DNA of 64,000 nucleotides, from contig NC_052156.1 in the NCBI RefSeq assembly GCF_902713615.1, positions 30,159,287 through 30,223,286 on the forward strand, written 5' to 3'. Every line of letters begins with the position of its first letter. Positions within the stretch are counted from its first letter, which is position 1. Source of the DNA: Scyliorhinus canicula. Its lineage: Eukaryota. This document shows, one piece after another, positions 10,891 through 53,830 of the stretch. The translations under genes were made by a program, and so were the position numbers. The notes beneath the pieces were generated by a model. That model was not told the DNA's origin. It saw only the letters and a list, made by a program, of their open reading frames with translations, and did no database searches.

Positions 10891-10919
10891 CCCTGGAAAT
10901 GCTGTGAATACTCTGCCCT

Positions 10920-10969
10920 GGGGGGGGGGGGGGGGGGGGGTGGGGGGGGGGGGGGGGGGGGGGGGGGGG
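10920..10969 (+). repeat. G21-T-G28 homopolymer tract
   Basis: Read directly from the sequence. Confidence 0.9.
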
Positions 10970-11124
10970 TCAGGCTTTGTTTTATAAGTGCTCCTGTGAA
11001 AGACATTGGGACTCCTCATTGTGTTGACGGTGCTTTACAAATGTAAGTTGTTGGTGGTGACTGCTGTGAGAAGTAGGAGCAGGTGCTCACACAGGTGAGG
11101 AGTGAAGACTAGGCCCAGACAGTG

Positions 11125-11600
11125 ACTCCTGGGCATGCGCCACGTCAGGCCGCCGTCACTCCCTGGTGACAAAACAAACAGGAAAATGCGGCGGGGGCGC
11201 CCCCTCCGGCCAGTGCCGGAAGCGCACGGGGCGGTCCGGAACCCTTGTGTCCCGTCCCTGTGGCGGGTACGTGGGTTTAGACGGACGGACAGGAAACCGA
11301 TGGGGGTTGTGGCGGCGCGGGGGGCGGTGTTTGTGTGGAGCGGGTAGGCTGGGGGAAATGAAGAGGATGTAGGACTGGCGGCGGGATGATGAGTACTAAA
11401 CAGGTGACGTGCAGGTACTGAGCCTCTTGAATCGTGTTCCTTCTCGGGGAAGGCCGGGCTGGTGTCCGGGACTGGCGGCTCCCTCCCGGGGGTTATCCGC
11501 CATCAGATGGAGGGGGGTCTGCAAGGGAGGGCCAGGCCTTCAGCACCGGACAGACCCCCCCCAGCACAAAGGGTCTGGACACTGCCAGGGCCTGGCTCAA
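11125..11600. promoter_or_regulatory. CpG-rich promoter and first exon region of MKRN2, possibly bidirectional
   Basis: Local GC and CpG enrichment. NRF1-like GGGCATGCGC (11131), CRE half-sites (CACGTCA, CGTCA), ETS/GABPA CCGGAAG (about 11216) and GC boxes GGGGCGG (about 11228, 11321). No TATA box seen. Confidence 0.8.
11389..11414 (+). CDS. MKRN2: Makorin-2 coding exon 1 (MSTKQVTC-R); an in-frame ATG also lies at 11386
   Basis: ATGAGTACTAAACAGGTGACGTGCAG|GTACTG, matching the MKRN2 N-terminus MSTKQ(I/V)TCR. Confidence 0.93.
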
Positions 11601-13372: not shown

Positions 13373-13501
13373 ATATTTTATGCATGGGGTCTGCCGTGAA
13401 GGGAGCCGATGTATGTTTTCCCATGATTTGTCTACAAGCAAGCCATCTACAATCTGTAAGTTCTACCAGAAAGGACAGTGTGCCTATGGTGACCACTGCA
13501 G
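13373..13501 (+). CDS. MKRN2: MKRN2 exon 2, C3H zinc fingers 1-2 ([43 protein letters not shown])
   Basis: Acceptor ctgtttag and donor GTAGGG; 129 nt; phases 2/2. Confidence 0.95.
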
Positions 13502-13734: not shown

Positions 13735-15850
13735 ACTTTTTATTCATATGTAAAAAGCAAGATGGTGGCCAGGGAAAGGACTGGACCACTTAAGGACAGT
13801 GGGGAAATCTATGTGTTAAGCCAGAAGAAATGGGGTAAGTACTTTGCAACAGTGTTCACCAAAGAAAGGGACTTTGTGGAAGATGATTCTTGGGTAGGGT
13901 GTGTGGATTGTCTGGATCATGGTAACATCGAAAACGAGGAGGTATTGGGTCTTTCGATAAGTCTCCTGGGCCGGATGGGATTTACCTCAGAATACTGAGG
14001 AAATTGCTGGGGTTTCGACTGCCATCTTTGTATCCTCATTAGCTACAGGTGCGATCCCAGAGGACTGGAGAATTAGCTAATAGCTAATCTGTTTAAGAAA
14101 GGGAGCAGGGATAATCCTGGAAACTATAGGCCGGTGAGCCTTCACGTCGGTAGTAGGTGAATTATTGGAGAGAATTCTCAGGGACAGGATTTATACCCAT
14201 TTGGAAACAAATGGACTCATAAGCGATAGACAGCATGGTTTTGTGAAGGGGAGATCGTGCCTCACTAACTTGATCGAGTATTTTGAGGAGATGACAAAGA
14301 TGATTAATGAGGGGAGGGTGGTGGATGTTGTTTAGATGGACTTCAGTAAAGCCTTTGACAAGGTGCCTCATGGCAGACTGGTACAAAAGGTGAAGTCACA
14401 CAGGATCAGAGGTGAGGTGGCAAGATGGATAGAGAACTGGATTAGAACATAGAACAGTACAGCACAGAACAGGCCCTTCGGCCCTCAATGTTGTGCTGAG
14501 CCATGATCACCCTACTCAAACCCACGTATCCACCCTATACCCGTAACCCAACAACCCCCCCTTAACCTTACTTTTTATTAGGACACTACGGGCAATTTAG
14601 CATGGCCAATCCACCTAACCCGCACATCTTTGGACTGTGGGAGGAAACCGGAGCACCCGGAGGAAACCCACGCACACAGGGGGAGAACGTGCAGACTCCA
14701 CACAGACAGTGACTCAGCCGGGAATCGAACCTGGGACCCTGGAGCTGTGAAGCATTTATGCTAACCACCATGCTACCCTGCTGCTGATTGGTCACAGAAA
14801 GCAAAGGGTAGCAGTAGAAGGGTGTTTTTCTGAATAGAAGGTTGTGACTAGTGGTGTTCCACAGGGTTCTGTGCTTGGGCCTCTTGTTTGTAGTGTACAT
14901 AAACGATTTGAAGGAAAATGTAGCCGGTCTGATTAGTAAGTTCGCGGATGACACCAAGGTTGGTGGAGTGGCAGATAGTGTTGAGGATTGTCAGAAGATA
15001 CAGCAGGACATAGATAGGTTGGAGACTTGGGCAGAGAAATGTCAAATGGAGTTTAATCCAGACAAATGGGAGGTAATGCATTTTGGTAGATCTAACATAG
15101 AAAGGAAATATACCATAAATGGCAAAACCCTTAGGAATATAGAAAGTCAGAGAGATCTGGAAGTGTAGGTCCACAGATCTTTGAAGGTAGCAACACAAGT
15201 AGACAAGGTAATCAAGAAAGCATATGGAATGCTTGTCTTCATTGGACGGGGCATGGAGTATAAAAACTGGCAAGTCATGCTACAGTTGTATAGCACCTTG
15301 GTACGGCTGCACTTGGAATATTGCACAGAATTCTGGTCGCAACACTACCAGAAGAATGTGGATACTTTGAAGAGGGTGCAGAAGAGGTTTACCAGGATGT
15401 TGCCTGGTCTGAAGGGTGTTAGCTATATGGAAAGGCTGAATCGACTCTGACTGTTTTCATTAGAAAGACAGGGATTAAGGGGTGACCTGATAGAGGTCTA
15501 CAAGATTGAGAGGCATGGATCGAGTGGATGGGCAGGCACTCGACAGGGTGGAGGGGTTAGTCTCCAGGGGCATAAAGTTAAGATCTGTGAGGCAAGGTTT
15601 AGAGGAGATGAGTGAGGCAGGTTTTTTTACGCAGAGGGTGGTGAGTGCCTGGAATGCGTTGCCAGGGGAGGTTGTAGAAGCAGATACATTAACGGCGTTC
15701 AAACAGCATCTTGACAAACGCATGGATAGGATGGGTATAGAGGGATACGGCACAAGGAAGTTCTGAGGGTTTTGGCAACGGCTGGTATCATGACCGGTAG
15801 AGGCTTGGAGGGCCGAAGGGCCTATTCCTGTGCTGCATTGTTCTTTGTTC
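13735..15850 (+). mobile_element. 5'-truncated CR1 LINE interrupted by a SINE
   Basis: NYRPVSL, KFADDTK and LEYC..FWS motifs; tail ending (GTTCTTT)n. Confidence 0.85.
14445..14783 (-). mobile_element. HE1/V-SINE with an alternative CR1-type tail, nested in a CR1
   Basis: SINE core plus tail GGGCCGAAGGGCCTGTTCTGTGCTGTACTGTTCTATGTTCT. Confidence 0.85.
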
Positions 15851-16715: not shown

Positions 16716-17541
16716 TGTTAAGGGAGTATGAGCTGAATTTGCTGCTGGCCAGCTGCGAGCAGTAAAGCCCTATCTAGTACCAACTAAAATAAAGTATTAC
16801 ACACACACAACATCCAAGTATAAAAGTCACATCTGTCTCCGTTCCACCTGAAGGTACAGATGACTAATTAAAGCACAAATGTATCTACTCAGACAAAGTG
16901 AAATGGATCCATGAAAGCATGGTAACAAAAGGCTTGAACATACTTATTGTTATGAAGCGTACTATTGTATTTTGAAGTCCTGAAAAGGTGTGGTGTTGTG
17001 AAATGCCTGATAATGTTATTATTGGTACAACAAATGAAAACGTCATGTTAAATGCTTGTATACTTTAACCTCTTTAGTGTATTCATCTCTGCAGATTCTT
17101 TAGCTGTTGAATAAGAAAAAACAGCCTCAATAGTTTTATTCTCTTTGCCTCTTCTTGCCACTTCCACCGAGTTTTTTTCCTCCCTTCCAATCTGCAAAAC
17201 CTTCTTGGTATCCCCCATACCCACCGTCCCAACTAGCTTTATTTTCTTGCCAACCCGTTGCAGCTCCAAAGCTGATGGGACTGTCCCAATAAGCAGGTAG
17301 CTGGGAGGCAGATGTTGACAAAAATCCAGCCGGTAGAATCCACCGGACTTTCTGCTGCAGCCTGCCTCTCCCACCAGCTTTTTGCCTGCAATTTAACATT
17401 TAAATTTAACATTTCCCCTTTTATATCAGTAGGTGATATTTGTGATTTAAGGTAAAAGGGTGTGTTGTTCACCAGCAGACCTAATTCTCTGATGAAGCAA
17501 TGTGGATGATGTCTAACTACATTCTGTTTTCCATCGGTAAG

Positions 17542-17720
17542 ATATGATCATGTGAAACTTCCTGGATCTAGAGCAGTGGGGCCAGTAATCTCTCGAGTCA
17601 CCTGCACACCTGTTGTTCACGATGCAATTACACAACCCGAAGCTGCAGAACCGACTGTGCCCGTCAAAGTTACTGAATCTGGGAGATGTAAAAAGAAGAC
17701 GCTTGAATTAAAAGATCGAG
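17542..17720 (+). CDS. MKRN2: MKRN2 exon 3 (YDHVKLPGSRAVG...KKTLELKDR-D)
   Basis: YDH completes zinc finger 2. AAG acceptor and GTGAGT donor; 179 nt; phases 2/1. Confidence 0.9.
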
Positions 17721-19000: not shown

Positions 19001-19193
19001 GGGGCAGCAAGGTGGCGCAGTGGATAGGTTCGATCCCGGCTCTGGTTCACTGCCCGTGTGGTGTCTGCACATTTTCCCCGTGTTTGCATAGGCTTCGCCC
19101 CCACAACCCAAAGATGTGCAGGCTAGGTGGATTGGCCGTGCTAAATTGCCCCTTAATTAAAAAAAAATTGAGTATGCTAAAAAAAATTTAAAA
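19001..19193 (+). mobile_element. Short A-tailed SINE variant
   Basis: TSD CTCTGCTGAA (18991, 19194); A-rich end. Confidence 0.8.
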
Positions 19194-20064
19194 CTCTGCT
19201 GAAACCCACTTCTTTGTTTTTGTTACTTCTAGACTCGACTATTTCAATGCTCTCCTGGCTGACCTCCCATCACCTATTTGCATAAGCATGAGCTCATCCA
19301 AAACTGCTGCTGGAGTCTTACTTGCACTATGCACCATTCACCTGTCACCCATGTGCTTCAAGTTCACCAATGCCTTTATTTTTAAAATTCTCATCCATGT
19401 GTTCAAAAGCCGCCCTGCCCCCCCCCCCCCCCCCCCCCCCCCTCATTTGTCTATCTTGTCCTTTGACCTTCTTGAAAATTTACCTCTGACCGTGTCACCT
19501 TACTCCCTCCTCCTTTGGCTTGATATCAGTTTTTATCCTATGAGAAGTGCCTTGGGATAGTTTACTGAATCTTGGTTATACAAAAAGAGGGAAGAAAAAT
19601 ATAACAAAAATTAGATTATTTATGCTACTTGATCTGAATATGCAATATAATATTTAACCAGTTTATTAACTGGAAATGACTGAAAATTGGGCTGCAGAAA
19701 TAATTGGAAGTACAAACTGATTACCATTCCTTTAGTTCTGAGAGTATAAGTTTCTTTTGCTGTGAGATTTTGATTCATGCTTACATTTTCTGTTAGAGCT
19801 TTATCTATTTTGTTAAGATTTGTTTGCCTATGTAGGCACTGCCAACTCTGGTTTTGGTACTAAATCCAGAAACAACCAAGAGACTTTGGTTTGTAGCAAG
19901 TCTCGTTCCCATCCACCAGAGCGAGCTAGAGCATGTGTAGGGCATCAGTATTATGTGAATGGGGGCAAAGCTCATTTTGTGCTTTTGGGCCATGCTGTAT
20001 TTCGCTTCTGTGCAGCCGAACTTCTATCCTTCAACATATAATGGACTCAAATGTTTTTTTCCCT

Positions 20065-22869: not shown

Positions 22870-23210
22870 ACCTTTGCAACCGAGCAGCAGAAAAATCTAA
22901 ATTGTTTCCTTTCCCACCATCTTACTGCAACACTACAAAGACTGCATCGCCTTTCTCTGACTCGGCAAAGTTTGTTTATGAGGATGTCCCAATGAAGCCG
23001 CCGTCATATTTGGACGCAGTTCGCAGTGGACTGGATGTTTCAGCATCAGTATGCAGTCATAATTCTGCACAGCAGCTGTGCCCTTTTGCAGCAGTTGGTG
23101 AATGCCATTATGGTGACAGCTGTTTATACCTTCATGGAGATGTGTGTGAAGTGTGTGAACTGCAAGTACTGCATCCAACTGACCTTGAGCAACGTAGAGC
23201 ACATGAACAG
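22870..23210 (+). CDS. MKRN2: MKRN2 exon 4: linker, C3H finger 3 and Cys-His motif
   Basis: Acceptor ctctttag; encodes [10 protein letters not shown]...[34 protein letters not shown]...RAHEQ; ends at the GC donor CAG|GCAAGT. Confidence 0.92.
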
Positions 23211-23831
23211 GCAAGTGTAGGTCAAAGTAATGTGCCATTCAATGGCCTGGATATACCCCTGTGCTATTAAAACTGTATCTTCTACATTCGGCAGCCACAA
23301 CTTGCTCTAGTTATTGCCAACTTGGTTTAATGAATTCAACTTTAAATTCTGCCAACTGAAAGAATTTACCTCTAAAATTCATCATGAAATAAAATCTCTG
23401 AAATTTCATCCTAAAGCAGTGAATTGAAAAAAAAAAAAGAGTAACACAAAGTCCTGAAAATGGGGGACGGCAGTATTTTAAAAATAAAATTCATGCCTCC
23501 CTTTTCTTGGGTTTATTGATTTTGTGTTCATTTTATTGATATGCTTTACATTTTTCTCATCCAAATGAATGCAAACATTTGTCTAATATGTATTATCTGT
23601 AAATATAAAGCATTATGAATGACACATATTTCATGTAATACTCCATCACAATTTAAGAGCTGAATTGTTATGCAATAGCGTATCCACAAAGCACGGCAAG
23701 CTAAGCAATGTGAGACCTGGTAGTTTACTATAAATGAATGAAGAAAGAGCTTGCATTTACATAGCACCTCCTATGACTTGTGGATCTCCCAAAGCATCTT
23801 GCAACCAATGAAGAACTTCTGAAATATAAAC

Positions 23832-24629: not shown

Positions 24630-24825
24630 ATGCCTCATGGCGCCGAGGTCCCAGATTCGATCCCGGTTCTGGGTCACTATCCATGTGGAGTTTGCATGTT
24701 CTCCCCGTGTTTGCATGGATTTTGCCCCCACAACCCAAAGATGTGCAGGATAGGTCGGATTGGTCACGCTAAATTGCCCCTTAATTAGTAAAAAATGAAT
24801 TGGGTACTCTAAATTTAAAAAAAAT
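24630..24825 (+). mobile_element. Short A-tailed SINE variant (5'-truncated)
   Basis: Core plus AAATTGCCCCTTAATT...GGGTACTCTAAATTTAAAAAAA. Confidence 0.8.
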
Positions 24826-24991
24826 GTCTAGGGCTTACAAAAGACCGTTGTTACCCAACTACCGCTCTCTAGTGACTACGTTACTGAGTTTTCCACTGAT
24901 TTACGATTGGACGGCTGGTGCAGCACTGCTGAGTTCAGTCATTTCTCTTCCTCCCTCCCAATCTCTCCTTTTGTTCTCATCAATTCTTCCC

Positions 24992-25123
24992 AAATACCAT
25001 CGGAGAGAAGATTTGGAATTCTTTCTGACTGCATTCACCCATATTGTCTATCCTGCATTAGACAGTGGCGATGTGCTAAACAGTTTGAGAATAACATAAT
25101 CAAGTGAGTGCAACTGGTTTTAC
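24992..25123 (+). pseudogene. Duplicated fragment of MKRN2 exon 5 (3' half plus donor site)
   Basis: 130/132 nt identical to 25435-25566. Confidence 0.9.
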
Positions 25124-25334
25124 CTTTGCTGATGTTTTACCACAAATACAATAACAACAAGCAGAGCACCTTGAGTAAACAGGAATTAACTGGAAGCTGT
25201 ACCATTATGCTAAAAGGCCTCTGGTCTGCCACCAGATAAAGACAGTATTATACCTTGTTGGTTGGGAAACTTGTTCAATTTGCTTGGATTATGTGTTCCA
25301 TAAATGCTGACTTTTGACTTTCCATTTCATTCAG

Positions 25335-25546
25335 ATGTGTCTCATTGCTTTTGAGCAAGACATGGAGAAAGCCTTTGCTGTGCAAAAGAGTCAAGATAAA
25401 GTCTGTAACATTTGTATGGAGATAGTCTATGATAAAATACCATCGGAGAGAAGATTTGGAATTCTTTCTGACTGCATTCACCCATATTGTCTATCCTGCA
25501 TTAGACAGTGGCGATGTGCTAAACAGTTTGAAAATAAAATAATCAA
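25335..25546 (+). CDS. MKRN2: MKRN2 exon 5, N-terminal part of the C3HC4 RING
   Basis: Acceptor ttcattcag and donor GTGAGT; [29 protein letters not shown]...[33 protein letters not shown]. Confidence 0.95.
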
Positions 25547-25952
25547 GTGAGTGCAACTGGTTTTACGGATCAAGTGCCAATTTTTAACTGTTGCTATGCA
25601 GATCACAATTAGTGAGGCCTCTGATGACCAGAATTGCACATATGTATGTGAGAGGAAAGTGCATCTGTTAACTAAGTAGGATATCCATTATAACGTTTCA
25701 TTTAAAACTCTTCTATCCATTGATGTAGGTCATAAATATTGGCCTCGGGAGTATTGTTACAATTATTGATGTGGGAGACAGCTAAATTGATGAGGCATTT
25801 CATCAATGAGACATTTTATTTGTAACAGGGATTCCAACCTTGTCCTGTATAGGAAATTTGCTCTGTACTGACTCTAGCAGCTAGTCATAATATTGGATCC
25901 ATTGATATGGGAAGAATGGAACTAATGGAATTTCTTGTCCTTAAAATACCTT

Positions 25953-26178
25953 GGGCAGCACGGTGGCGCAGTGGGTTAGCCCTGCTGCCTCACACCGCTG
26001 AGGTCCCAGGTTCGATCCCGGCTCTGGGTCACTGTCCGTGTGGAGTTTGCACATGAGTCTCCCCATGTATGTGTGGGTTTCGCCCCCACAACCCAAAGAT
26101 GTGCAGGCGAGGTGGATTAGCCACACTAAATTGCCCCTTAATTAGAAAAATGAATTGGGAACTCTAATTTAAAAAAAT
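25953..26178 (+). mobile_element. Short A-tailed SINE variant
   Basis: Full head, core and short tail. Confidence 0.82.
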
Positions 26179-27123
26179 ATATATGTTAGCTGCCAAGATC
26201 CAGTGAAGCTTTTAAACTATGTAGATGGATTTCTTTTAGAGAAAATTCTTCCCACCCCAATCTTTTGGCCTAATGCTTAACAGTACAGCCCACATTTAAC
26301 AGTGAGTGATCAAGACCAGAAGACACCTGGTTTGACTACGTATCTGTATTGAACCAGAGTATTAGTCGGAGCCTTTCTGTATATTTAATTATACATTTAA
26401 AAGGTTCCAATAAATCCATGATATGTGAGGGCAAAGCTAAAGCAGTTTGTGCATATCTTCTGCACACTGAGAATGACTTAAACTTTATTTTCTTTAATAA
26501 ATTTAGAGTACCCAATTATTTTTTTTAAATTAAGGGGCAGTTTAGCATGGCCAATCTTTTTGGGTAGTGGGGGTCAAATAATGGCTAGAGTCTAGTTTGA
26601 CAGGAAATTACTGATTATATTGTGCTGTAATACAGAGGATCCCAAACTTTCTATTTGCTGAACCCCTCTTTGGAGGCTCATGTTCCATTCATGTTCCTCT
26701 CCCTTTCTGTAAGAAACAATATTTTGTCGTCCCCAAGGAAATGACCCTGCCTTCAGTTGTGCAGGGACCTTGTACCTCAATTAACTTCTTCAAGGATCTC
26801 TCTTTTCAAATTAGTCAGGAGATGCTACAGAAATATCTTTCATTGTAATTAGCGTAGTATCGCCTAGCGATAGGAAATACATTATCGGGTAATCTCTACA
26901 CAAGATGTTTGACTGCCCATAGATTTCTGCAAACAGACATTGAGCCAATTGGAGCTGCTTCTGGCCCCCTTACAATCACTCCTCGATTAGGGATGCATCT
27001 ATAAATCAAATTATTAATTGCTTCAATTTTCCATTTAGTTTTTTTGGACTAATTTTATACGTCGCATGTGCTAACTTTCATTAAAAAATCTCTCAATTAA
27101 AAAAAAAAAAATTGCTCTTCTAG

Positions 27124-27234
27124 GTCCTGTCCTGAGTGTCGCGTAGTGTCAGAATTTGTGATCCCGAGTGCTTATTGGGTGGAGGAAAAAGAGGAAAAGG
27201 ACCAGCTTATTGAAGCATTCAAGCAGGGAATGAG
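27124..27234 (+). CDS. MKRN2: MKRN2 exon 6, end of the RING ([37 protein letters not shown])
   Basis: Acceptor ctcttctag and donor GTGAGG; 111 nt. Confidence 0.95.
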
Positions 27235-27759
27235 GTGAGGTGATCTTGCTTTATGAAACGGGTTATTAAATTTCCACCTGTGGAGATTGGCTACCATGGA
27301 AGTAGTAAAATCTGAATGAAGAGGATTTAACTTCTGTTTGAGTTGACGCTTTCCATTAGTTGTGTGGCAGAGTTTCATATTCTTACAGCTAGGAGGGTGT
27401 GATGTGGCTAGGCATGTGCCCTTTCAGTTGACCTAGCTCTTGATTTACAGAAAAATGTTTGGTTATAAGCACCTTGGAATCAGAAGGCATTCAAATGTCT
27501 AAGCTGAGACTGCACTTTTCTGTGCAATGTACGCTTCATAAATTTTGCTATTTACGATATAATTTTTCCCCCCCCCTGGCCAATCCAACTTGCGAATCTT
27601 TGTTAATGCATAGAATTAGCAGTGAGAGAAAGCAAGGAAAGTTTGGGAGATGGTAGTATCCCAAATCCACTCAGATAGAATCTCTCTAGTTTCAACAGAG
27701 CTCATTCATTTCATGCATATGCACGCTGGGAAATCCTTGTTTCCACTAGCGGGGAAATG

Positions 27760-28120
27760 TCACTGCACTAGTGATCCAGCGGCCCAGGATAATGCTCCTG
27801 GTACATGGGTTCAAATCCCACCATTGCAGCTTGCGGAACTAAAATTCAATTAATAAATCTGGCATTGCAAAGCTAGTCTAAGTAATTGTAACCATGACAA
27901 TTATGATCAATGTTTCAAAAACCCTTCTAGTTCACTAATGTCCTTTTAGGAATGAAATCCACCATCCTTACCTAGACTGACCTATAAGTGCCTTTAGACG
28001 CACAGCAATGTGGTTGCTCTTAACTGCTCTCTGAAAGCCACTCCAATTCCAGGACCATTAGGGATAGCAACAAATGCTGGCCTTGAAAGTGATGCCCATA
28101 TCCCATGACGGGATATAAAA
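27760..28120 (+). mobile_element. Second SINE family copy
   Basis: Reverse-complement similarity to 10520-10890. Confidence 0.7.
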
Positions 28121-28787
28121 TTCTATTGATGGAATAGTGCTAAATTCTAACACCAGTGGAGCATGACTCACTTTGTTCTTGCTTAGGCAGTACATGCAGG
28201 TGACCTGGATCAGGGAGTGGTGTTTCCTTCATAGATTTGGTATCCTTGAAATACTTGCTTTGTATGAGTTTGTGTTGTATATCGTTGACATGTTGAAAAT
28301 TCGTGAGACACCCTTCACATTTGTGTTTAATAAATTAATCAGCTCTCTTTGTATTTTGCTGGTATTTAACTGGTGTCACGAAACTTGGTTATGCTTTTGT
28401 AAATACATGTTACATAGAAAACACCATGTAAGTTATCTTACTGCAGTTCTTAATACACTAAAATAAATTCAACAATGGGCAGAACAGTAAGAGTAAATAA
28501 TTGTTGGGGGGGTCAAAGTCTAGAAAACCTTCAAATGTGTTTTACTGATGTGTGGCATTCAATATTTTGGTAACTGTTAGGGTGTTATTAATGCGCGTTT
28601 TTACAATCCATTGCTGATATCAGTGCGGTGAGGTCATTAGTTGTCACTCGTGTATATTCGTATTTAACTGCCGTTAGTTCTGATTCTTTTCAGTTATTGT
28701 TATTTTGTTAATCTAGCTGATCCAGTTTTTCACTCCATGCTGTACATAAACTTGGTTATTTTATATATTAAAAGATTAATGTTATTT

Positions 28788-31700
28788 TATTTTTTAAAAT
28801 AATTTTTATTGAAATTTTTTACAGAAAATATAACAACAAACAATAACAAGCAACAATAAAACAACATAAGTATAACACCTCCAAGACCGTAGCAACGCAT
28901 GTATTGTAACCCCTCACCACCCCCCCCCCCCCAAACCCAGTAAATAACAAGAGAGCTTAAAAATAAATTAAAATTAAATAAACATAGTCAACGCCCCCCC
29001 CCCCGGTTGCTGCTGCTGCTGACCCAGTACCCTATTGCTTAGCCAGAAAGTCGAGGAAAGGTTGCCACCGCCTAAACAACCCTTGTACCGATCCTCTCAG
29101 GGCGAATTTGACCTTCTCCAGCTTAATAAATCCCGCCATGTCATTGATCCAGGTCTCCACGCTTGGGGGTCTCGCATCCTTCCACTGTAGCAAGATCCTC
29201 CGCCGGGCTACTAGGGACGCAAAGGCCAAAACACCGGCCTCTCTCGCCTCCTGCACTCCCGGCTCCACCGCAACCCCAAAAATCGCGAGTCCCCAGCCTG
29301 GCTTGACCCTGGATCCTACCACCCTCGACACCGTCCTCGCCACCCCCTTCCAGAACTCCTCCAGTGCCGGGCATGCCCAGAACATATGGGCATGGTTCGC
29401 TGGACTCCCCGAACACCTGACACACCTGTCTTCGCCCCCAAAGAACCTACTCATCCTAGACCCGGACATGTGGGCCCGGTGCAGCACCTTGAATTGGATG
29501 AGGCTAAGCCGCGCACATGAGGAAGAGTTAACCCTCTCCAGGGCATCAGCCCATGTCCCATCTTCGATCTGTTCCCCCAGTTCCCCCTCCCACTTAGCCT
29601 TTGGCTCCTCTACTGACGCCTCCTCCACCTCTTGCATTACCTTGTAGATATCAGATATCTTCCCATCCCCGACCCAGACCCCCGAAAGCACCCTGTCACT
29701 CACCCCCCTCGCGGGAAGCAAAGGGAATCCCTCCACCTGCCGCCAAGCAAACGCCTTTACCTGCAGGTACCTGAACATGTTCCCCGAGGGGAGCTCAAAT
29801 TTCTCCTCCAACTCCCCCAGGCTCGCAAACCTCCCATCAATGAACAGGTCCCTCAGCTGTCTGATGCCCGCTCTGTGCCAACCCTGGAACCCCCCATCAA
29901 TGTTTACCGGGATGAACCGATGGTTCCCCCTTAGCGGAGCCTCCATCGAGCCCCCCACTTTCCCCCTATGTCGCCTCCACTGCCCCCAGATCTTGAGGGT
30001 AGCCGCCACCACCGGACTCGTGGTATACCTCGTAGGAGGGATCGGCAACGGCGCCGTTACCAGGGCCCCCAGGCTTGTGCCTCCACAGGACGCCATCTCC
30101 AACCTTTTCCATGCTGCCCCCTCCCACTTGCGCACCATCGACACATTGGCCGCCCAATAATACCCCGAGAGATTGGGTAGCGCCAGCCCCCCACCATCTC
30201 TACCCCACTCCAAGAAGACCCTCTTCACCCTCGGGGCCCCATACGCCCAAACAAAGCTCATGATGCTGCAAGTCACCCTCCTAAAAAAGGCCCTAGGGAT
30301 AATGATGGGCAAACACTGAAAAAGGAAAAAGAACCTCGGGAGCACCGTCATTTTGACGGACTGCACTCTACCCGCCAGCGATAGCGGCACCATGTCCCAC
30401 CTTTTAAATTCCTCCTCCATCTGCTCCACAAGCCTGGTAAAATTAAGCTTGTGGAGAGTCCCACAACTCCTGGCCACCTGCACCCCCAGGTACCTAAAAC
30501 TCTTCACTGCCCTCTTAAACGGGAGCCTCCCAATTACCACCTCCTGATCACCCGGGTGCACTACAAATACCTCGCTCTTGCCCAGATTCAGCTTATAGCC
30601 CGAGAAGCTCCCAAACTCAGCCAACAGCTCCATCACCCCCGGCATTCCCCCCTCTGGGTCCGCCACATACAGCAGCAGGTTGTCCGCATACAACGATATC
30701 CGATGTTCCTCCCCACCCCGCACCAAACCCCTCCACCTCCCCGACTCCCTCAACGCCAAAGCCAGAGGTTCAATCGCCAGTGCAAAAAGCAAGGGGGACA
30801 GGGGGCACCCCTGCCTGGTCCCACAGTAGAGCCTGAAGTACTCTGATCTCCTTCCATTAGTAACTACACTCGCCATCGGGGCCTCATAAAGCAACCTCAC
30901 CCAGTTGATGAACCCCTCCCCAAATCCAAACTGCTCCAGCACCTCCCACAGGTACTCCCACTCAACTCTATCAAACGCCTTCTGTGCATCTAGCGCCACC
31001 ACTATCTCCGCCTCCCCCTCCACCGCCGGCATCATAATAACATTAACAATCTCCGCACATTCGTGTTAAGCTGTCTTCCCTTGACAAATCCTGTCTGATC
31101 CTCGTGTATCACCCTTGGCACACAGTCCTCTATCCTGGTGGCCAGGATCTTCGCTAGCAACTTAGCATCCACATTGAGGAGCGAGATTGGCCTGTATGAT
31201 CCACACTGCAGGGGGTCCTTATCCCGCTTCAGGATCAAAGAAATCAGCACCCGTGACATCGTCGGGAGCAAAGCCCCCCCCCTCCCATGCCTTATTGAAG
31301 GCTCACACCAACAGGGGGCAGACCAGGTCCGCATACTTTTTATAAAATTCCACCGGGAACCCATCCGGCCCCGGCGCCTTTCCTGACTGCATTTGATAAA
31401 TTCCCCTGACTAGCTCCTCCAACTCAGTCGGCGCCCCCAGCCCCTCCACCAGCTCCTCCTGCACCTTTGGGAAACGTAGCCTGTTCATGAAGCTCTCCAT
31501 CCCCCCCCCCCCCCCCCCCCCCCGGTGGCTCCGACCGGTACAGTTCCTCGTAAAAGTCCCTAAAGACCCCGTTCACCTCTGCCCCCTTCCGCACCACATT
31601 CCCACCCTTATCCATCACTCCACCAATTTCTCTAGCCACATCTCGCCTGCGGAGCTGATGCGCCAGCATCCTACTCGCCATCTCCCCATACTCATAAACT

Positions 31701-34402
31701 GCGCCTTGCGCCTTCCTCCACTGTGTCTCCGCCTTTCTTGTGGTCAGCAAGTCGAACTTGGCCTGCAAGCTATGCCGTTCCCCCAGCAATCCCTCCTCCG
31801 GGGCCTCCGCTTACCTCCTATCCACACCCAGGAGCTCCCCCACCAGTCTCTCTCTCCCTCCGGGCCCTCCCCCGGATCACTGCCTTCAGAGCCGCCCAAA
31901 CCATCTCCACCCGGACCTCACCCGTGTCGTTGGTCTCAAGATACCCCTCAATACTTCCCCGGACCCTCCTACACACCTCATCAGCCAGCAACCCCACATC
32001 CAGACGCCATAGCGGGCGCTGGTCCTGCGCCTCCCCCATCTCCAGATCGACCCAGTGCGGAGCATGGTCTGAAATTGCTATGGCCGAATACTCGGCATCC
32101 TGCAGCCTCGGGATCAATCCCCTGCTCAGGACGAAAAAATCAATTCGGGAGTAAACCCTATGCACATGGGAGAAAAAGTACTCCCATGCCCTCGGCCTCC
32201 CAAACCTCCAGGGATCCACCCCTCCCATCTGGTCCATAAACCCCCTCAGCACCTTGGCCGCCGTCAGCCTCCTGTCTGTCCTTGAACTGGACCGGTCTAG
32301 TGGGGGATCCAGCACCGTGTTAAAGTCTCCCCCCATGATTAGGCCCCCTGCCTCCAGGTCCGGAATGCGGCCCAACATACGCCTCATAAAGCCAGCATCA
32401 TCCCAATTTGGGGCATACACTTTTACCAGCACCACCTTCTCTCCCTGCAGCCTACCCTTCACCATAACAAATCTGCCCTCCTTGTCCGCCACCACCTCAG
32501 ACGCCTCGAACGCCACCCTCTTCCCCACCAGAATCGCCACCCCCCCCGGTTCTTCGCGTCTAATCCTGAGTGGAAAACCTGCCCTACCCACCCCTTCCTC
32601 AGACGAACCTGGTCCGCCACCTTCAAGTGGGTCTCCTGGAGCATAGCCACGTCCGCCTTCAGCCCCTTCAAATGAGAAAATACTCGAGCCCGCTTAACCG
32701 GCCCATTCAGCCCCCTCACGTTCCAGGTGATCAGCTGGATCAGAGGGCACTCCGCCCCCCTCCCCCTCCGACTAGCCATAGCTCATCGACTGCTCGCCCC
32801 AGGCCAGCACACCCCACCCGACCCGTTCCCTATGACAATACCGCCTCTCCTCTACCCCCCGGCCCACACCAGCTCCTTCCTGGCCATTCCAGCAGCAACC
32901 CGGTATCCCCCCCCCCCCCCCCCCCCCCCCCCGCCCCCAGGCTAGGACCCCCCTAGCCGCGACGCACCCTCCATGGTACTTCCGTGAGTCAGCTGACTTC
33001 TGCTGACCCCGGCAACTCCCGCCAAAACCTGGCCCCTCCCGACGTGGGGTCATTCCCCCGCCTGCCACACCTCCTTGGCTCCGCTTCAGTGCGGAAAAAA
33101 ACCAGTAGAGGCCAAACCCCCACCGCCAGCTCCACCCCTCCTGCCCCGCAGCGCGGGAAACCAGAGGAAAGCCCGCGCTTTCACGCTGCCCCACCCCACC
33201 TTTCTGACGCAGCTCCCAAATTCCAGCTCCACCCCATCCCCCAGTCCCGTACAGAAGAAAAACAAACCCCCAACATTCCCCTCATAACACAAAACCATAC
33301 CCAACAGAGCAAGAACCAGCATAAAAAATGCATGTCAAAATTACAAAAACAGCAACAGCAAAAACAGCAACAACCGTATTACACAGGACCCCGCAGCCCC
33401 CAGACCCTAGTTCAAGTCCAGCTTCTCCGCCTGTACAAAGGCCCACGCCTCCTCCGGGGACTCAAAGTAGTAGTGCCGGTCCTTATATGTTACCCACAGA
33501 CGCGCAGGCTGCAGCATTCCAAATTTGACCTGCTTGGCATGCAGCACCGCCTTCGTCCGGTTAAACCCGGCCCGCCGCTTAGCCACCTCCGCACTCCAGT
33601 CCTGGTAGATTCGCACTACCGAGTTCTCCCACTTGCTGCTCCTCCTTCTTGGCCCAGCGCAGCACACACTCCCGGTCACTGAACCGATGGAACCGCACCA
33701 GCACCGCCCGCGGGGGTTCATTCGTCTTGGGCCTCCAGGCCAGCACTCTGTGGGCTCCCTCAAGCTCCAGGGGCAAATGGAAGGACCCCGCCCCCATCAA
33801 CGAATTCAGCATCGTGGCCACATAGGACGAAAGATCAAACCCCTCCAGCCCTCCGCCAGGCCCAGGATCCTCAAATTCTTTCGCCTCGTGCGAAAGTCCA
33901 GCTCCTCCAAGCGGTCTTGCCACTTTTTGTGAAGTGCCTCGTGCATCTCCACCTTCCCCACGAGGACCATGGCCTCCTCCTCCCGATCAGCGGCCTGCTG
34001 CTGCAACTCCTGAATGGCCGCCCCCTGGGCTGTCTGGGTCTCAAGCAGCTTGTTGGTAGTCGCATTCAGGGAGTCCAGTAACTCGGCCTTCAGCTCCGCA
34101 AAACAGCGCAAAAGAGCAGCTTGCTGCTCCTGCGCTCACTTCCACCAATCCTCGGGTGCTCCTCCGGCCGCCATTTTGTCCTCCTTCCCCCGCTTTTTCT
34201 GGGGAGCTGCTGCAGCCTTTTCCTTTGCCCCACTCCGGGTGCGCACCATAAATTTCGGGGAATGTTCCTCCAAACACCTTCCCCCCCACCGGGAATCGTT
34301 GAAACAGCGCCGTTTGGGGCCCTAAAACAGGCCCGAAAGTCCTTTGATAGCGGGAGCTGCCGAACGTGCGGCTTAGCTCCGCATCACCTCAACCGGAAGT
34401 CC
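28788..34402 (-). mobile_element. Full-length L1-clade non-LTR retrotransposon (about 5.6 kb) with frameshifted ORF1 and ORF2
   Basis: TSD TTAATGTTATTT (28776-28787, 34403-34414); 5' end GGACTTCCGG; AATAAA and A-rich 3' end. ORF1 pieces at about 33407-34240 (RRKNLRILGL). APE endonuclease motifs (TWNVRGLN, QETH, GGDFN, SDH); RT motifs (QGCPLSP, LYADN); C-terminal CxxC...HMFWAC. Confidence 0.93.
29032..31035 (-). CDS. L1 ORF2 reverse transcriptase and C-terminal segment (667-aa open piece)
   Basis: From the ORF track: LDAQKAFDRVEW, GTRQGCPLSPLLF, LYADN (normally YADD). Confidence 0.8.
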   Translation of the reverse strand: MMPAVEGEAEIVVALDAQKAFDRVEWEYLWEVLEQFGFGEGFINWVRLLYEAPMASVVTNGRRSEYFRLYCGTRQGCPLSPLLFALAIEPLALALRESGRWRGLVRGGEEHRISLYADNLLLYVADPEGGMPGVMELLAEFGSFSGYKLNLGKSEVFVVHPGDQEVVIGRLPFKRAVKSFRYLGVQVARSCGTLHKLNFTRLVEQMEEEFKRWDMVPLSLAGRVQSVKMTVLPRFFFLFQCLPIIIPRAFFRRVTCSIMSFVWAYGAPRVKRVFLEWGRDGGGLALPNLSGYYWAANVSMVRKWEGAAWKRLEMASCGGTSLGALVTAPLPIPPTRYTTSPVVAATLKIWGQWRRHRGKVGGSMEAPLRGNHRFIPVNIDGGFQGWHRAGIRQLRDLFIDGRFASLGELEEKFELPSGNMFRYLQVKAFAWRQVEGFPLLPARGVSDRVLSGVWVGDGKISDIYKVMQEVEEASVEEPKAKWEGELGEQIEDGTWADALERVNSSSCARLSLIQFKVLHRAHMSGSRMSRFFGGEDRCVRCSGSPANHAHMFWACPALEEFWKGVARTVSRVVGSRVKPGWGLAIFGVAVEPGVQEAREAGVLAFASLVARRRILLQWKDARPPSVETWINDMAGFIKLEKVKFALRGSVQGLFRRWQPFLDFLAKQ

Positions 34403-36944
34403 TTAATGTTATTTATTAACTAGGCATTTTGACCTTTTTGTGGTCAAGATACCACAGCTTTTTGGCGACGAGAACAAAAAATTAGAACTTTCAGCACGTT
34501 CAACAAAATTTTGCTTTTCCGATGAAAGATAAGTTCGCAGCATCACGGCTATGTTTGGGTCTATCAGTGAGTATGTGGAAGAAAATGAGAACTGGCTGGA
34601 TTGAATATGTGAAAAGTTGGGAACAGTTTCTTGGCAAATTATAATAATAATTACAATAATCTTTGTTGTCACAAATAGGCATACATTAACACTGCAATGA
34701 AATTACTGTGAAAAGCCCCTCGTCGCCACATTCCGGCATCTGTTCGGGTACACAGGGAGAATTCCGAATGTCGAAATTATCTAACAGCTCGTCTTTTGGG
34801 ACTAGTGGGAGGAAACCGGAACATCCGGAGGGATGGATCACAGACGAGGCTAGAAAGCGCTCAATTCTCCTGAGTGTGTGTTGGGTAAAGACTTGCAAGC
34901 TAGTGAGAACTTTAGCTACACCATGGAAACCAGGGGATACTTCATTTGCGGATTTAGTTGCATTCCTCCGAATCAGCAAAATCCTAAACCCTCAGCAATT
35001 GTACAATGTTTCAAATACTATAGTCTTTTTTGGAAAACAGGACAGTCTTTAGCTAACTTAGTTGCTGAATTATGTCAGCTCTCTGAACGTTTTGAGTATG
35101 GGGCAGTTTTGGAAGACATGCTTTGGACAGATTAGCTTGTGGCATTAACGAGGACAGCATTCAGCGGCATTTGCTGGAAGAAGTCACACCAGCTGGAGGT
35201 TCCCTACCAAGTCACTCGCCACTCTGACTTGGAAATATATCGCCGTTCCTTCACTGTCGTTGGGGCAAAATCCTGGAACTCCCTCTCTAACAGCACAGTG
35301 GGTGCACCTACACCTTGGGGACTGCAGCGGTTCAAGAAGGCAACTCTCCACCACCTTCTGAAGGGTAACTAGGGATGGGCATTAATTGCTGGCCAAGCCA
35401 GTAACTCTCATCCTATAAATGAATTTTTAAAAACTTACTTTTAAGAAGACTGTAGAAATGTCTCAGGTCATAGAAATGGCTGCTCAAAATGCAAAAGATG
35501 TTGTGGTGACTAGGGGCTTTTCACAGTAACTTCACTGCAGTGTTAATGTATGCCTACTTGTGACAATAAAGATGGCGGCACACAGGTAGGTTCATCGATT
35601 AGAAAATGAACCTGCACGTAAAAAGGTGAAGACTGGAGTGTTTTAGGTGTAGAAGGTCACAGTTTGCGATTCATTGTAAGTTTATGAACAGGGTACATTG
35701 GCGTGGCACTACAGTTAAATTGTTCTAGATCCTCAGGCTACTCTCTTTTTCAAACCGAGGGCCATGCCCTACGCCATTAAAGGCAAAGTGGAGGAGGAGT
35801 TGATGGAGTCACCAGTGTTGCTACACAGATTACAGCTTAGTCGCAAAACTCCTGAAGATTGATGTTTAATTAAGGCATTAATTTAATTGTATTTCTGTAT
35901 TTAAAGAAAATTAAAATTAATGGGGGGAGAAGTGTTATAGAGTGGTTTTTATTATGCATCATCTTGTTTAAATCCATCGCTGATGTCATCAGTAAGTGCT
36001 GTCACATTGCCACCTGTGTATATTCAGCTTTAACTGCCGGTAGTACTGATTCTTTTCTGTTATTGTTATTTCGATGTTCTAACTAGCTGCTCCCGTTTTT
36101 GGAGTCCATACTGTATTTTAAACTTTGTTATTTTTAAATATTAAAGATGATTTATTTATTAACTTTATTAGCAACGTGCTCCGACTACCATTTTGTGGTC
36201 AAGGCTGACACATTTCTTTGTAAAAGTGGAACAGTTGAGTTCAGGGAAGTTCTGGATTCTTGGCAAGTGTTTTGTTCTTTTCCTAGTCACTAGGTGGCAA
36301 TCTAGTTTAACACAATATCGCTTGCCAACAGATCTAGCAGGAGAAATTCAGTAGAGTTTAAAATCCAAAGTGATTTTGCTTTTCCAGGTTTCTGAATTTC
36401 TGTTAAAGGGAGAATATAAGGATGCATGCACCACCGAGGCTAAATCGGAGAGCAATACTTTAGAATAAAATGTGCAAGAAACTTTGTGATTGTGTACTTA
36501 ATTTTTCAAGAGTGAAGATGTATCCAAAAATTGGCATTTTTATTTCCACTAATTTTCTTCCCTGCCCCATGAAAGCATTCCAATAAATTACTTCATGTAA
36601 TTTACAGAACTGTTGTCAATACAGCCAAGGGAATTTAAAAGATGAATGTTGTGCCTTTATCCTATGACCGTCTGTGTAAATAAATCTACAAAGGGTCATA
36701 ACTTATGGGAAAGGATATAAAGTCTATGTATGATGTAAATTCAAACAAAGCCCGCTATAGCTATTGCCATTTCTCCCCCCCCCCCCCCCCCCCCCCCACA
36801 CCAAAGGATAAATTTAATTTCAATTTGCACTGTGATTTGGCTTCAATATGTGAACTTCCAAAGGCGCTATACCACAGAACAGTCACAGCACAGAAAGAGG
36901 CCATTCAGGCCATCATGTCTGCACCAGCCAAAAAAGAAACTAGT

Positions 36945-37872
36945 TAGGTCTGATTAGCAAGTTTGCAGATGATACAAAGATTGGTGGAGTTCCAGATAGC
37001 GAGGTGGACTGTCAGAGAATACAACAAAATATAGATAGATTGGAGAGTTGGGCAGAGAAATGGCAGATGGAGTTCAATCCAGGCAAATGCGAGGTGATGC
37101 ATTTTGGAAGATCAAATTCAAGAGCAGACTATATGGTCAATGGAAGGGTCTTGGGGAAAATTGATGTACAGAGAGATCTGGGAGTTCAGGTCCATTGTAC
37201 CCTGAAGGTGGCAACGCAGGTTGAGAGAGTGGTCAAGAAGGCATACAGCATGCTTGCCTTCATCGGACGGGGTATTGAGTACAACAGTCAGCAAGTCATG
37301 TTACAGTTGTATAGGACTTTGGTTAGGCCACATTTAGAATACTGCGTGCAGTTCTGGTCGCCACATCACCAGAAGGATGTGGATGCTTTGGAGAGGGTGC
37401 AGAGGAAGTTCACCAGGATGTTGCCTGGTATGGAGGGGGCTAGCTATGAAGAAAGGTTCAGTAGATTAGGATTGTTTTCATTGGAAAGATGGAGGTTGAG
37501 GGGGGACCTGATTGAGGTCTACAAAATTATGAGAGGTATGGACAGGGTGGATAGCAACAAGCTTTTTCCAAGAGTGGGGGTGTCAGTTACAAGGGGTCAC
37601 AATTTCAAAGTGAGAGGGGGAAAGTTTAAGGGAGATGTGCGTGGAAAGTTTTTTACGCAGAGGGTGGTGGGTGCCTGGAACGCTTTACCAGCGGAGGTGG
37701 TAGAGGCGGGCACGATAGCATCATTTAAGAGGTATCTAGACGGGTATATGAACGGGCGGGAACAGAGGGAAGTAGACCTTGGAAAATAGGAGGCAGGTTT
37801 AGATAAAGGATCTGGATCGGCGCATGCTGGGAGGGCCGAAGGGCCTGTTCCTGTGCTGTAATTTTCTTTGTT
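36945..37872 (+). mobile_element. CR1 3' fragment with an intact frame
   Basis: ORF 37004-37789 (WAEKWQMEFNPGKCEVMHFG...) plus tail. Confidence 0.88.
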
Positions 37873-38883
37873 GTTTGTAGTTGCTCATTTTAATCCCACT
37901 TTCCAGCACCTGGTGCGTAGCCTTGCAGATTGCAGCGCTCCAGGGGCAGATCCAAGTACTTGTTATACAAGTGTCCTTTTTCTCCAGGCACTTTTTGTTT
38001 TGAATCTACATAGAATGATAGAATCCGTACAGTGCAGGATGCCATTCGGCCCATCAAGTCTGCACCAACTCTGAAAGCACCCTAACCTAGGCCCAATTCC
38101 CCTTCCTAACCCTGTAACCCCACCGAGGAACAATTTGGCATATCCAATTCACCTAACTCAGGATTTCTTCTTTTAGTAGAGTATATTCTGACTGAGACAA
38201 ATTAACGAATACCATATATGGTGTGTGAACTGTATTCCTGAAAAGGTTTTATAACTAAACTTGAATGTGTCTTTCTAATATAATGCATTTAGCAAAGATT
38301 AGAATTGGCTTGGTGTAGATAGAGGCTGGCAAAATAGATTTTGGACACCAACTTGCATGTAGATTTACAAAATATAGTAAAATCCTGCTCTTAACCATTT
38401 CAAATTGTGGGCTGTTTTTCTGTTTGGCACAGACAGTAATGTAAAATTTTGATTTTCGTTTCATCATACTTCACAAGTCATATTTGAATCTTAAGATATG
38501 GACCGGTGGCATCTGTTTCTGCAACTAATGATTTGCAATAGTTAATTAAATGCTGCCATAGTTAATAAGAGGCTGGGAGGAACCAAATGTCAGTGTTTGT
38601 ATTACGTATTTTTATCTTTGGCACACACAGCGTATCTCTGCTCACACCACATCATGTTCTAAGAATACACAGCACTTTGAGTGCTATCTTAAAAAAAAAT
38701 CATGGCTTTCAATATCTTGAGGCAGGTTTACTGGTCACAGTTTTCAGAGCCAGCAGTTTTTTAATTGCTTTCCTGCCATCATTTTGTGGGGTATGTGTTG
38801 GACCAACTGTGGTCCTTCTGTATTCCAATATTCAAATGCCTCAATTTCATAACGCAACCAAGTTGGTTATAACTGGTACTTTG

Positions 38884-39111
38884 AGGGCAGCACGGTGGCA
38901 CAGTGGTTAGCATTGTTGCCTACGGCGCTGAGGACCGGGGTTCGAATCCCGGCCCTGGGTCACTCTCCGTGTGGAGTTTGCACATTCTCCCCGTGTCTGC
39001 GTGGGTTTCACCCCCACAACCCAAAAGATGTGCAAGATAGGTGGATTGGCCACGCTAAATTGCCCCTTAATTGGAAAAAGTAATTGGGTACTCTAAATTT
39101 TTTAAAAATTA
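38884..39111 (+). mobile_element. Short A-tailed SINE variant
   Basis: 15-bp TSD ATAACTGGTACTTTG (38869-38883, 39112-39126). Confidence 0.88.
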
Positions 39112-39450
39112 ATAACTGGTACTTTGTTATGCCACCTCGTGCAGCAGAAAAAATGTCCAAAATGCAGTGACATGATTTTAAATTAATGGTTGCTATCAAA
39201 AAAAGTAGATGGTCAATGTTTTGTGATTGAGTTAACATTAAATAGAGTAAGCAAAATGGATAACAGTGGTGGAATAATTACTGATGGTTCCATGTGGAGC
39301 ATTGTCAATATCTAGTCTGGAACCTCAAAGTGTAGCTGGAGAGTGATGTGTAAAATATACTTTGGATTTACCCAAAGCTAGATTACCAAATACTACAAGT
39401 ATTGTGAATTATATATATATGCCCCTTTTTCTATTTTTTTCTATGAACAG

Positions 39451-39595
39451 TAAGAAGGCTTGTAAATACTTTGACAAGGGAAAAGGGTCCTGTCCATTTG
39501 GTGGAAAGTGCCTTTACCTGCACGCTTACCCTGATGGAACAATGGCAGAGCCCGAGCAGCCGAGAAAGCAGCTCAGCTCGGAAGGCAATGTGAGG
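39451..39595 (+). CDS. MKRN2: MKRN2 exon 7, C3H finger 4 ([29 protein letters not shown]...EGNVR)
   Basis: Acceptor aacag and donor GTAAAT; 145 nt. Confidence 0.95.
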
Positions 39596-39729
39596 GTAAA
39601 TAACCAAAGTCCTAAATATTTCGCTGCATGATGTTGTTTTGATGAACCTTTTCAGTATTCGTCCCAGGGCGTTTGAAAAGCATAAGCTGGTGAACCACGG
39701 ACTCGAGATGCATTAACTTAGTCATCGTT

Positions 39730-39960
39730 GGGCGGCACGGTGGCACAGTGGTTAGCATTGCTGCCTACGGCGCTGAGGACCCGGGTTCGAATCCCGGCCC
39801 TGGGTCACTGTCTGTGAGGAGTTTGCACATTCTCCCCGTGTCTGCGTGGGTTTCACCCCCACAACCCAAAGATGTGCAGGTTAGGTGGATTGGCCACGTT
39901 AACTTGCCCCTTAATTGGAAAAAATGAATTGGATATTCTAAATTTATTAAGAAAAAAAAA
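39730..39960 (+). mobile_element. Short A-tailed SINE variant
   Basis: Flanked by AACTT(A)GTCATCGTT repeats. Confidence 0.85.
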
Positions 39961-40541: not shown

Positions 40542-40724
40542 TTCCTTCACTCGGTGCGACTGTGGGATTTTATTGAAGAACGGGAGCACAGGGATGTTCC
40601 CCAGCATACAACCGAAGATGAAGTGGCAGAGCTTGGCGATCTCTTCATGCATCTTTCAGGAACAGAGGAGCGCAATGCATCTAGTGAGAGTCAGGCCGAC
40701 CAGCCTGTTTCTGTAGTGTTATAA
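40542..40724 (+). CDS. MKRN2: MKRN2 exon 8 ([15 protein letters not shown]...[10 protein letters not shown]...VSVVL*)
   Basis: Acceptor cctgcag and TAA at 40722-40724. The spliced CDS totals 1326 nt. Confidence 0.93.
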
Positions 40725-53616: not shown

Positions 53617-53830
53617 TTTTAAAAAAATTTAGAGTACCCAATTCTTTTTTCCAACTAAGGGGCAATTTAGCGCGGCCAATCCACCTACCCTGCACATCTT
53701 TGGGTTGTGGGGGACGCAGACACGGGGAGAATGTGCAAACTCCACCGGTCAGTGACCCGTGGCCGGGATGGAACCCGGGTCCTCGGTGGCATGAGGCAGC
53801 AGTGCTAACCACTATGCCACCATGCCGCTC
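53617..53830 (-). mobile_element. Short A-tailed SINE variant
   Basis: Reverse copy with degenerate CATGGAAC.TT.CAT flanking repeats. Confidence 0.8.

Follow-up and report, generated by a model that had tools for sequence, protein, structure and literature searches.

A partial copy of the RING exon in intron 4 of catshark MKRN2 is probably a pseudo-exon

Does a partial, nearly identical copy of a RING exon, lying in the intron just upstream of that exon, serve a shark makorin gene as an exon of its own, and what would the resulting transcript or protein look like if it did? An initial annotation of this DNA from Scyliorhinus canicula had suggested that the copy could act as an alternative exon that either removes part of the RING or shifts the reading frame. 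We examined this suggestion in the window, by which we mean the whole 64-kb stretch of DNA that was analysed, using comparisons within the sequence, protein and domain searches and a word search of sequencing runs.

The gene that carries the copy is MKRN2. Splicing of eight coding exons gave a protein of 442 amino acids that is identical to XP_038668605.1 (S. canicula probable E3 ubiquitin-protein ligase makorin-2 isoform X1). The initial annotation had placed junctions of this gene at 23210, 25335 and 27124, and all three fit the model, which reproduces the RefSeq protein exactly. The exons are as follows.

11386-11414, plus strand: MKRN2 exon 1 (spliced model)
13373-13501, plus strand: MKRN2 exon 2 (spliced model)
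17542-17720, plus strand: MKRN2 exon 3 (spliced model)
22870-23210, plus strand: MKRN2 exon 4, with the third CCCH finger and the start of the Cys-His motif; ends in phase 0 (Pfam, spliced model)
25335-25546, plus strand: MKRN2 exon 5, 212 nt, with the end of the Cys-His motif and RING ligands C1-C6 (Pfam PF00097, spliced model)
27124-27234, plus strand: MKRN2 exon 6, which supplies the final RING pair, CPEC, and would be joined downstream in both splice paths (spliced model)
39451-39595, plus strand: MKRN2 exon 7 (spliced model)
40542-40724, plus strand: MKRN2 exon 8 (spliced model)

Domain order, orthology and the RAF1 neighbourhood all agree on this identity. Pfam matches, taken exon by exon, gave two CCCH fingers, a third CCCH finger, the Cys-His motif, a C3HC4 RING and a fourth CCCH finger, in that order. 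The nearest relatives of the S. canicula model, among the matches listed, were all named makorin-2; the protein is 97% identical to basking-shark MKRN2 and differs from S. torazame MKRN2 at 3 residues. About 16 kb past the MKRN2 stop, a minus-strand open reading frame (57105-56944) represents the last coding exon of RAF1, tail-to-tail with MKRN2. This frame matched the RAF1 C terminus with an E-value of 3.9e-17, compared with 1e-8 for BRAF, and a tail-to-tail arrangement of MKRN2 and RAF1 has been described (PMC9024132). We also found that intron 4 of MKRN2 is a GC-AG intron, as the exon 4 donor CAG/GCAAGT (23205-23220; here and below, a slash marks a splice boundary) was the sole junction that reproduced the RefSeq protein.

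From start to stop, MKRN2 spans 29.3 kb here, compared with about 22 kb in two S. torazame assemblies. Intron 6 (27235-39450) takes up about 12 kb and holds many repeat-like, proline-rich open frames. An A-rich stretch (27084-27121) lies directly upstream of exon 6, and a G-rich run with a poly-Gly frame (10913-10979) precedes the MKRN2 start codon by about 400 nt.

Intron 4 contains the copy, which we located both with a repeat finder and by base-by-base comparison.

24992..25123, plus strand: intronic copy of the 3' end of exon 5 (112 nt) and the start of intron 5 (20 nt) (repeat finder, blastn)
25435..25566, plus strand: duplication source (base-by-base comparison)

The source consists of the final 112 nt of exon 5 (the RING exon) together with the 20 nt of intron 5 that follow. 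The copy is direct and matches it at 130 of 132 bases, with a blastn E-value of 5e-62 over the whole 64-kb window. One of the two mismatches (25089 G, compared with 25532 A) changes GAA to GAG and is silent, and the other (25095 C, compared with 25538 A) changes AAA to AAC and thus K to N; both the extent of the copy and these two substitutions are as the initial annotation had reported them. Homology ends abruptly at both edges, and base-by-base comparison found none beyond either end. The two repeats are spaced 443 nt apart, the copy being upstream, with a gap of 311 nt between the end of the copy and its source. The sequence GAGAATAAC is diagnostic of the copy and marks it against exon 5.

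Repeats of this quality are scarce in the window. Only three pairs with at least 95% identity were found in the 64 kb: a 41-nt piece of a SINE, the copy and its source, and a palindrome at 59130-59352. In this sequence, the repeat of the RING exon is real, far beyond chance, and a singular event outside any repeat family. The palindrome is 223 nt long and matches its own reverse complement at 98.7%.

A different possibility is that the assembly created the copy and that the 132 nt are missing from the genome of the animal. The word search described below is not decisive on this point: about 82% of the distinct 31-letter words of 24930-25570 could be present in a run that lacks the copy, and the highest share observed was 0.72. 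The structure of the repeat speaks against such an artefact, as the two copies differ at two positions, their junctions are clean and unique, and they lie 311 nt apart rather than in tandem. A collapse or mis-join does not usually look like this. An assembly error appears unlikely on this evidence, and we assign the absence of the copy from the animal the lowest probability of all the readings considered here, close to nil.

We then turned to the splice signals, most of which lie at the two ends of the copied exon segment.

24939..24991, plus strand: pyrimidine tract, 53 nt, 87% pyrimidine, directly upstream of the copy (composition scan)
24976..24980, plus strand: branch-point-like CTCAT (yUnAy), with its A at 24979, 26 nt upstream of the first AG (motif match only)
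25004..25010, plus strand: three candidate acceptors within 7 nt, namely GAG before 25006, GAG before 25008 and AAG before 25011 (sequence reading)
25104..25109, plus strand: copied splice donor GTGAGT (CAA/GTGAGT), the same as the exon 5 donor (sequence reading)

The initial annotation had described a pyrimidine-rich tract of about 55 nt, free of AG, directly ahead of the copy, with the first AG after it at 25004-25005, a weak GAG acceptor and a retained GTGAGT donor. Each of these descriptions held on inspection. The tract is 53 nt long and lies within an AG-free zone of 65 nt (24939-25003), which ends at that same first AG, and the donor of the copy is that of exon 5. Plus-strand tracts as rich in pyrimidines as this one are rare: there are only two in the 64 kb, and they account for 0.05% of in-gene positions. 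The other is at 19409-19474, a C-rich run that reads as poly-proline.

Acceptors are generally preferred in the order CAG, TAG, AAG and GAG, with GAG the least used and seldom a functional site (PMC2699507). The first AG of the copy is of this least used kind. The six real MKRN2 acceptors other than that of exon 6 comprise three CAG, two TAG and one AAG, compared with GAG, GAG and AAG at the copy. This difference supports the reading that we favour, namely that part of the exon was truly duplicated, that the copy is a pseudo-exon, either skipped or included only as splicing noise, and that its inclusion mainly yields substrates of nonsense-mediated decay (NMD). We consider this reading probable, though well short of certain.

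Several signals count on the other side. At positions -20 to -5, the first acceptor of the copy has 11 pyrimidines out of 16, compared with 11-13 out of 16 at the real MKRN2 acceptors, so that it does not look poor apart from the G at -3. The combination of a constitutive donor, a rare tract and normal pyrimidine content places the sites of the copy above those of most pseudo-exons. We counted the pyrimidine content, the constitutive donor and the fact that the tract is one of two in 64 kb against the reading as a pseudo-exon; together, the strong donor, the rare long tract, the branch-point-like CTCAT and the AG-free zone favour some splicing. The real acceptor of exon 3 (17528-17541, ccatcggtaag/A) and the acceptor of the copy (24996-25005, ccatcggag/A) have the 7-mer CCATCGG in common, probably by chance.

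The copied segment runs from exon 5 into intron 5 and carries no poly(A), and it was therefore taken from DNA, or from an unspliced template, of this locus and not from mRNA. A retro-copied fragment was rejected because the copy includes 20 nt of intron 5, has no A-tail and is flanked by a single repeat, the 6-mer TGCTGA, which is at chance level. Transposon-derived exonisation was also rejected, as neither the copy nor the tract has another match in the window. Fragility of the landing site through H-DNA was not supported, as a search of the tract for mirror repeats of at least 9 nt found none. We saw no microhomology at the two junctions of the copy and no source for the pyrimidine tract elsewhere in the 64-kb window. 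The motif GTTTTAC recurs downstream of the copy (25134-25140), but annealing would have left the sequences in a different order. The tract and the copy could have been brought together by chance, by low-complexity DNA that is prone to breakage, or by selection, and these are indistinguishable here. The adjacency was counted against the reading as a pseudo-exon.

Two SINEs (24631-24825 and 25950-26180) bracket the duplicated region and are unrelated to the duplication. They belong to a tRNA-derived family whose members are 70-85% alike and occur on both strands, in at least ten other places as well; further copies are found, for example, at 38885-39109, 39728-39946, 53625-53828 and 19026-19190. 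A SINE-mediated event was rejected, as the flanking elements are ordinary members of this dispersed family and their spacing is 1355 nt, compared with the 443-nt spacing of the repeats.

Copy and source diverge by 1.5% (2 of 132 bases), a figure with broad Poisson limits. A shark mutation rate that was measured directly, 7e-10 per site per generation (PMC10587355), converts this divergence into about 1e7 generations. The copy may therefore be old in years despite its young look, and it might be common to S. torazame. At the changed codon, the other sharks retrieved keep K, which makes the N in the copy the derived state.

The same arithmetic bears on another history, in which the copy is an older functional alternative exon that has been kept like exon 5 by gene conversion, and in which the tract evolved or was retained for splicing. 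At the measured rate the copy need not be recent, the abrupt ends of its homology could be those of a conversion tract, and a random landing next to such a tract, given the small fraction of in-gene positions that qualify, would be very unlikely. However, a full old duplicate would be expected to retain homology to the first 100 nt of exon 5, and none is found upstream of 24992; nor is such an isoform annotated in any shark retrieved (among the matches listed). We consider this history very unlikely.

What inclusion of the copy would produce depends on the acceptor used and on the fate of exon 5. The exon in question is the following.

25006..25103, plus strand: putative 98-nt pseudo-exon that starts in phase 0 and ends in phase 2 (frame analysis)

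This is the exon that the initial annotation had proposed, and frame analysis agrees that it has the phases of exon 5; the lengths of the two, 98 nt and 212 nt, are both 2 mod 3. In agreement with the two outcomes that had been predicted for it, joining exon 4 to the copy and then to exon 6 retains the frame and removes 38 amino acids including the first CxxC, and inclusion of the copy together with exon 5 shifts the frame. The in-frame product would read HEQ/RRFGILSDC...ENNIIK/SCPECR. This predicted form has 404 amino acids, carries the K-to-N change and lacks CNIC, the CxxC that provides RING ligands C1 and C2, within the missing 38 residues. The segment encoded by the copy gave a partial, sub-threshold RING match in Pfam. 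Only the first AG (GAG before 25006) gives this in-frame product. The 96-nt and 93-nt forms, from the acceptors at 25008 and 25011, run into TGA at 25026-25028, with three or more junctions after it.

In the frameshifted exon 4-copy-exon 5-exon 6 transcript, the 98-nt form meets TAG at 25423-25425, and three exon junctions follow. Upon inclusion with exon 5, the distance from the stop to the last exon junction downstream exceeds 50 nt, and NMD is predicted by the 50-nt rule. The intron between the donor of the copy and exon 5 is 231 nt long. As exon 5 has a CAG acceptor and the same donor as the copy, and as this intron separates them, the default product of inclusion would be a stop-containing transcript and not a RING-dead protein.

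These frames bear directly on the proposal that the 98-nt copy replaces exon 5 in a RING-dead isoform, with NMD clearing transcripts that include both, so that the two exons would look mutually exclusive. The product would be a 404-aa makorin-2 with four CCCH fingers that lacks the end of the Cys-His motif together with RING C1 and C2, and it could retain binding of RNA or substrates while having no ligase activity. Equal phases and two exon lengths that are not multiples of three suit such a replacement, and human MKRN1 is known to be spliced into forms with an incomplete RING (PMC9024132). These MKRN1-short forms are the nearest parallel, as they come from a makorin paralogue and truncate the RING by alternative splicing and polyadenylation (PMC9024132). 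In MKRN1-short, however, the RING is cut at its C-terminal end and the final zinc finger is missing, whereas the hypothetical catshark form would lose N-terminal RING ligands by way of a duplicated exon fragment. The proposal also requires use of the weakest of three adjacent AGs together with skipping of exon 5, for which the sequence gives no reason, and an intron of 231 nt between the exons imposes no steric exclusion. Because the in-frame product depends on GAG, the least used acceptor (PMC2699507), the acceptor leans against a regular isoform. Together with the lack of any such protein in the searches described next, this leaves a RING-dead isoform with very little probability.

Protein searches gave no trace of a form made with the copy. 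A full-length profile search and a search with the catshark protein, the latter with at least 120 matches, gave RefSeq X1 (442 aa), X2 (430 aa) and X3 (391 aa) as the only isoforms of this gene among the matches listed. These three all contain the normal exon 5 and are set apart by their N termini alone. The junction peptide HEQRRFG (HEQ/RRFG) and the variant ENNIIK occurred in no retrieved protein (among the matches listed). Of the retrieved makorins, 229 have the RRFGIL motif, and an isoform without the first CxxC was absent from these as well. Both the composition of X1-X3 and this count (0 of 229) lean against a regular isoform. The copy has AG and GT in the right order and is missing from RefSeq X1-X3 (among the matches listed), as is the case for a pseudo-exon. 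A protein search with the open reading frame that spans the copy returned zero catshark fragments of any kind and is therefore silent on expression. The open reading frame of exon 5 was found on no contig as a recorded called gene, and the left junction of the copy had no match in a scan of metagenome contigs. NMD isoforms usually go without annotation as protein isoforms, which makes the negative results from RefSeq and makorin proteins weak.

We also looked for sampled 31-letter words of 24930-25570 in sequencing runs, and found S. canicula oligo-dT RNA runs and RNA-like contig sets. The most frequent share of the sampled words was 0.34, seen in nine runs from six studies. This is the share expected from exon 5 alone, which predicts 182 of the 544 distinct words of the interval. 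Some RNA-like runs lay above this mode, with shares of 0.36-0.39 and 0.56-0.59. One possible explanation for this excess is a retained intron, and another is the copy itself; the excess was counted against the reading as a pseudo-exon. DNA runs of a close relative, probably S. torazame, were also found, with a roughly 97-98% identity that is a rough figure obtained from the ratio of word shares.

The absence of the copy from RefSeq proteins says little about a poison cassette, NMD isoforms being rarely annotated. On this account, the copy is included together with exon 5 in a measurable share of transcripts, and the premature stop lowers MKRN2 output through NMD, possibly with tissue regulation, for which the CU-rich tract could bind PTB-type repressors. 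The position of the TAG ahead of three junctions agrees with this account, as do the strong donor, the long tract, the branch-point-like motif and the AG-free zone. The exon 4 donor is in addition a GC donor, a class that is enriched in alternatively spliced genes (PMC2490688). The candidate acceptors are of unfavourable kinds, however (GAG, GAG and AAG; PMC2699507), and regulatory poison exons as a rule have a long history and strong conservation, whereas the copy is only 2 of 132 bases off its source. We regard a poison cassette as unlikely, though it is the most credible of the alternatives to a pseudo-exon.

Comparison with known systems places the copy in a familiar class. Animal genomes contain many unannotated intronic copies of exons, of which only a part is expressed, for the most part weakly (PMC9013439). 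Such copies are a raw material for substitution-type alternative splicing; they are frequent, and split reads support only some of them (PMC9013439). Like the tandem exon duplications described by Ivanov and Pervouchine (2022, PMC9013439) and by Letunic et al. (2002, as cited in PMC9013439), the catshark copy is intronic and homologous to the adjacent exon, and has the same strand, phase and donor. It differs from them in that it represents only the 3' 112 nt of a 212-nt exon, lacks an acceptor of its own, borrows an unrelated tract and is not in tandem. Intronic copies of neighbouring exons are thus a known kind, of which the catshark copy is a partial, dispersed member that is odd only in its position behind a rare tract.

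Mutually exclusive exons kept apart by frame incompatibility and NMD offer a second comparison, since the two catshark exons are likewise both 2 mod 3 and their double inclusion shifts the frame. Mutually exclusive exons, as outlined in PMC9741552, are full-length homologues that encode interchangeable protein segments and are mostly ancient. The catshark exons share the phase needed for replacement but are not full-length homologues, as only 98-112 nt of the 212-nt exon are copied and there is no homology upstream of 24992. In addition, the putative catshark substitute would delete 38 amino acids and destroy a domain. Pseudo-exons and poison exons offer a third comparison, and they too are intronic AG-to-GT segments whose inclusion brings a premature stop. 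Whereas classic poison exons are conserved and their inclusion has been measured, the catshark copy is a putative exon that looks young and has GAG and AAG acceptors.

The following course of events would account for these observations if the copy is a pseudo-exon. In a probably lineage-specific event, the 3' 112 nt of exon 5 and the adjoining 20 nt of intron 5 were copied once into intron 4. The copy brought its strong donor with it and, by chance, landed behind a long pyrimidine tract, which gave it the anatomy of a pseudo-exon. We infer from its poor acceptors, clustered within 7 nt, that it is normally skipped or included at the low level of a cryptic exon. On inclusion, its expected partner would be the intact exon 5, 231 nt downstream, and a premature stop would follow, at TAG 25423 in the 98-nt form or at TGA 25026 in the 96-nt and 93-nt forms, with probable removal of the transcript by NMD. 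The protein product of the gene would then be the normal 442-aa makorin-2.

An unused copy would be no more than what local duplication ordinarily leaves behind, and mainly a caution for annotation and read mapping: reads from exon 5 are ambiguous because copy and source share 97 identical bases. If the copy is used, it would represent an early stage of exon birth, in which a duplicated exon end with its donor was joined to an unrelated, pre-existing pyrimidine tract, and the gene would yield either an NMD isoform that limits itself or an E3 that binds RNA but has lost ligase activity. In the strongest form of this second case, the copy would be a functioning MKRN2 exon, older than it looks through gene conversion and spliced by way of its rare tract, acting as an NMD brake or encoding the 404-aa RING-dead, RNA-binding and possibly dominant-negative protein. 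We hold this combination to be quite improbable. Were it true, the locus would document a regulatory exon born of partial exon duplication behind a ready-made acceptor tract.

The arrangement may matter for the stability of the gene as well, as direct repeats 443 nt apart could mediate deletion of the first 100 nt of the RING exon. Elsewhere in the gene, intron 2 contains long open frames at 14848-15763 that are reverse-transcriptase-like (YINDLKENVAGLISKFADDTKVGG) and, judged from the listing of open reading frames, are probably a LINE fragment.
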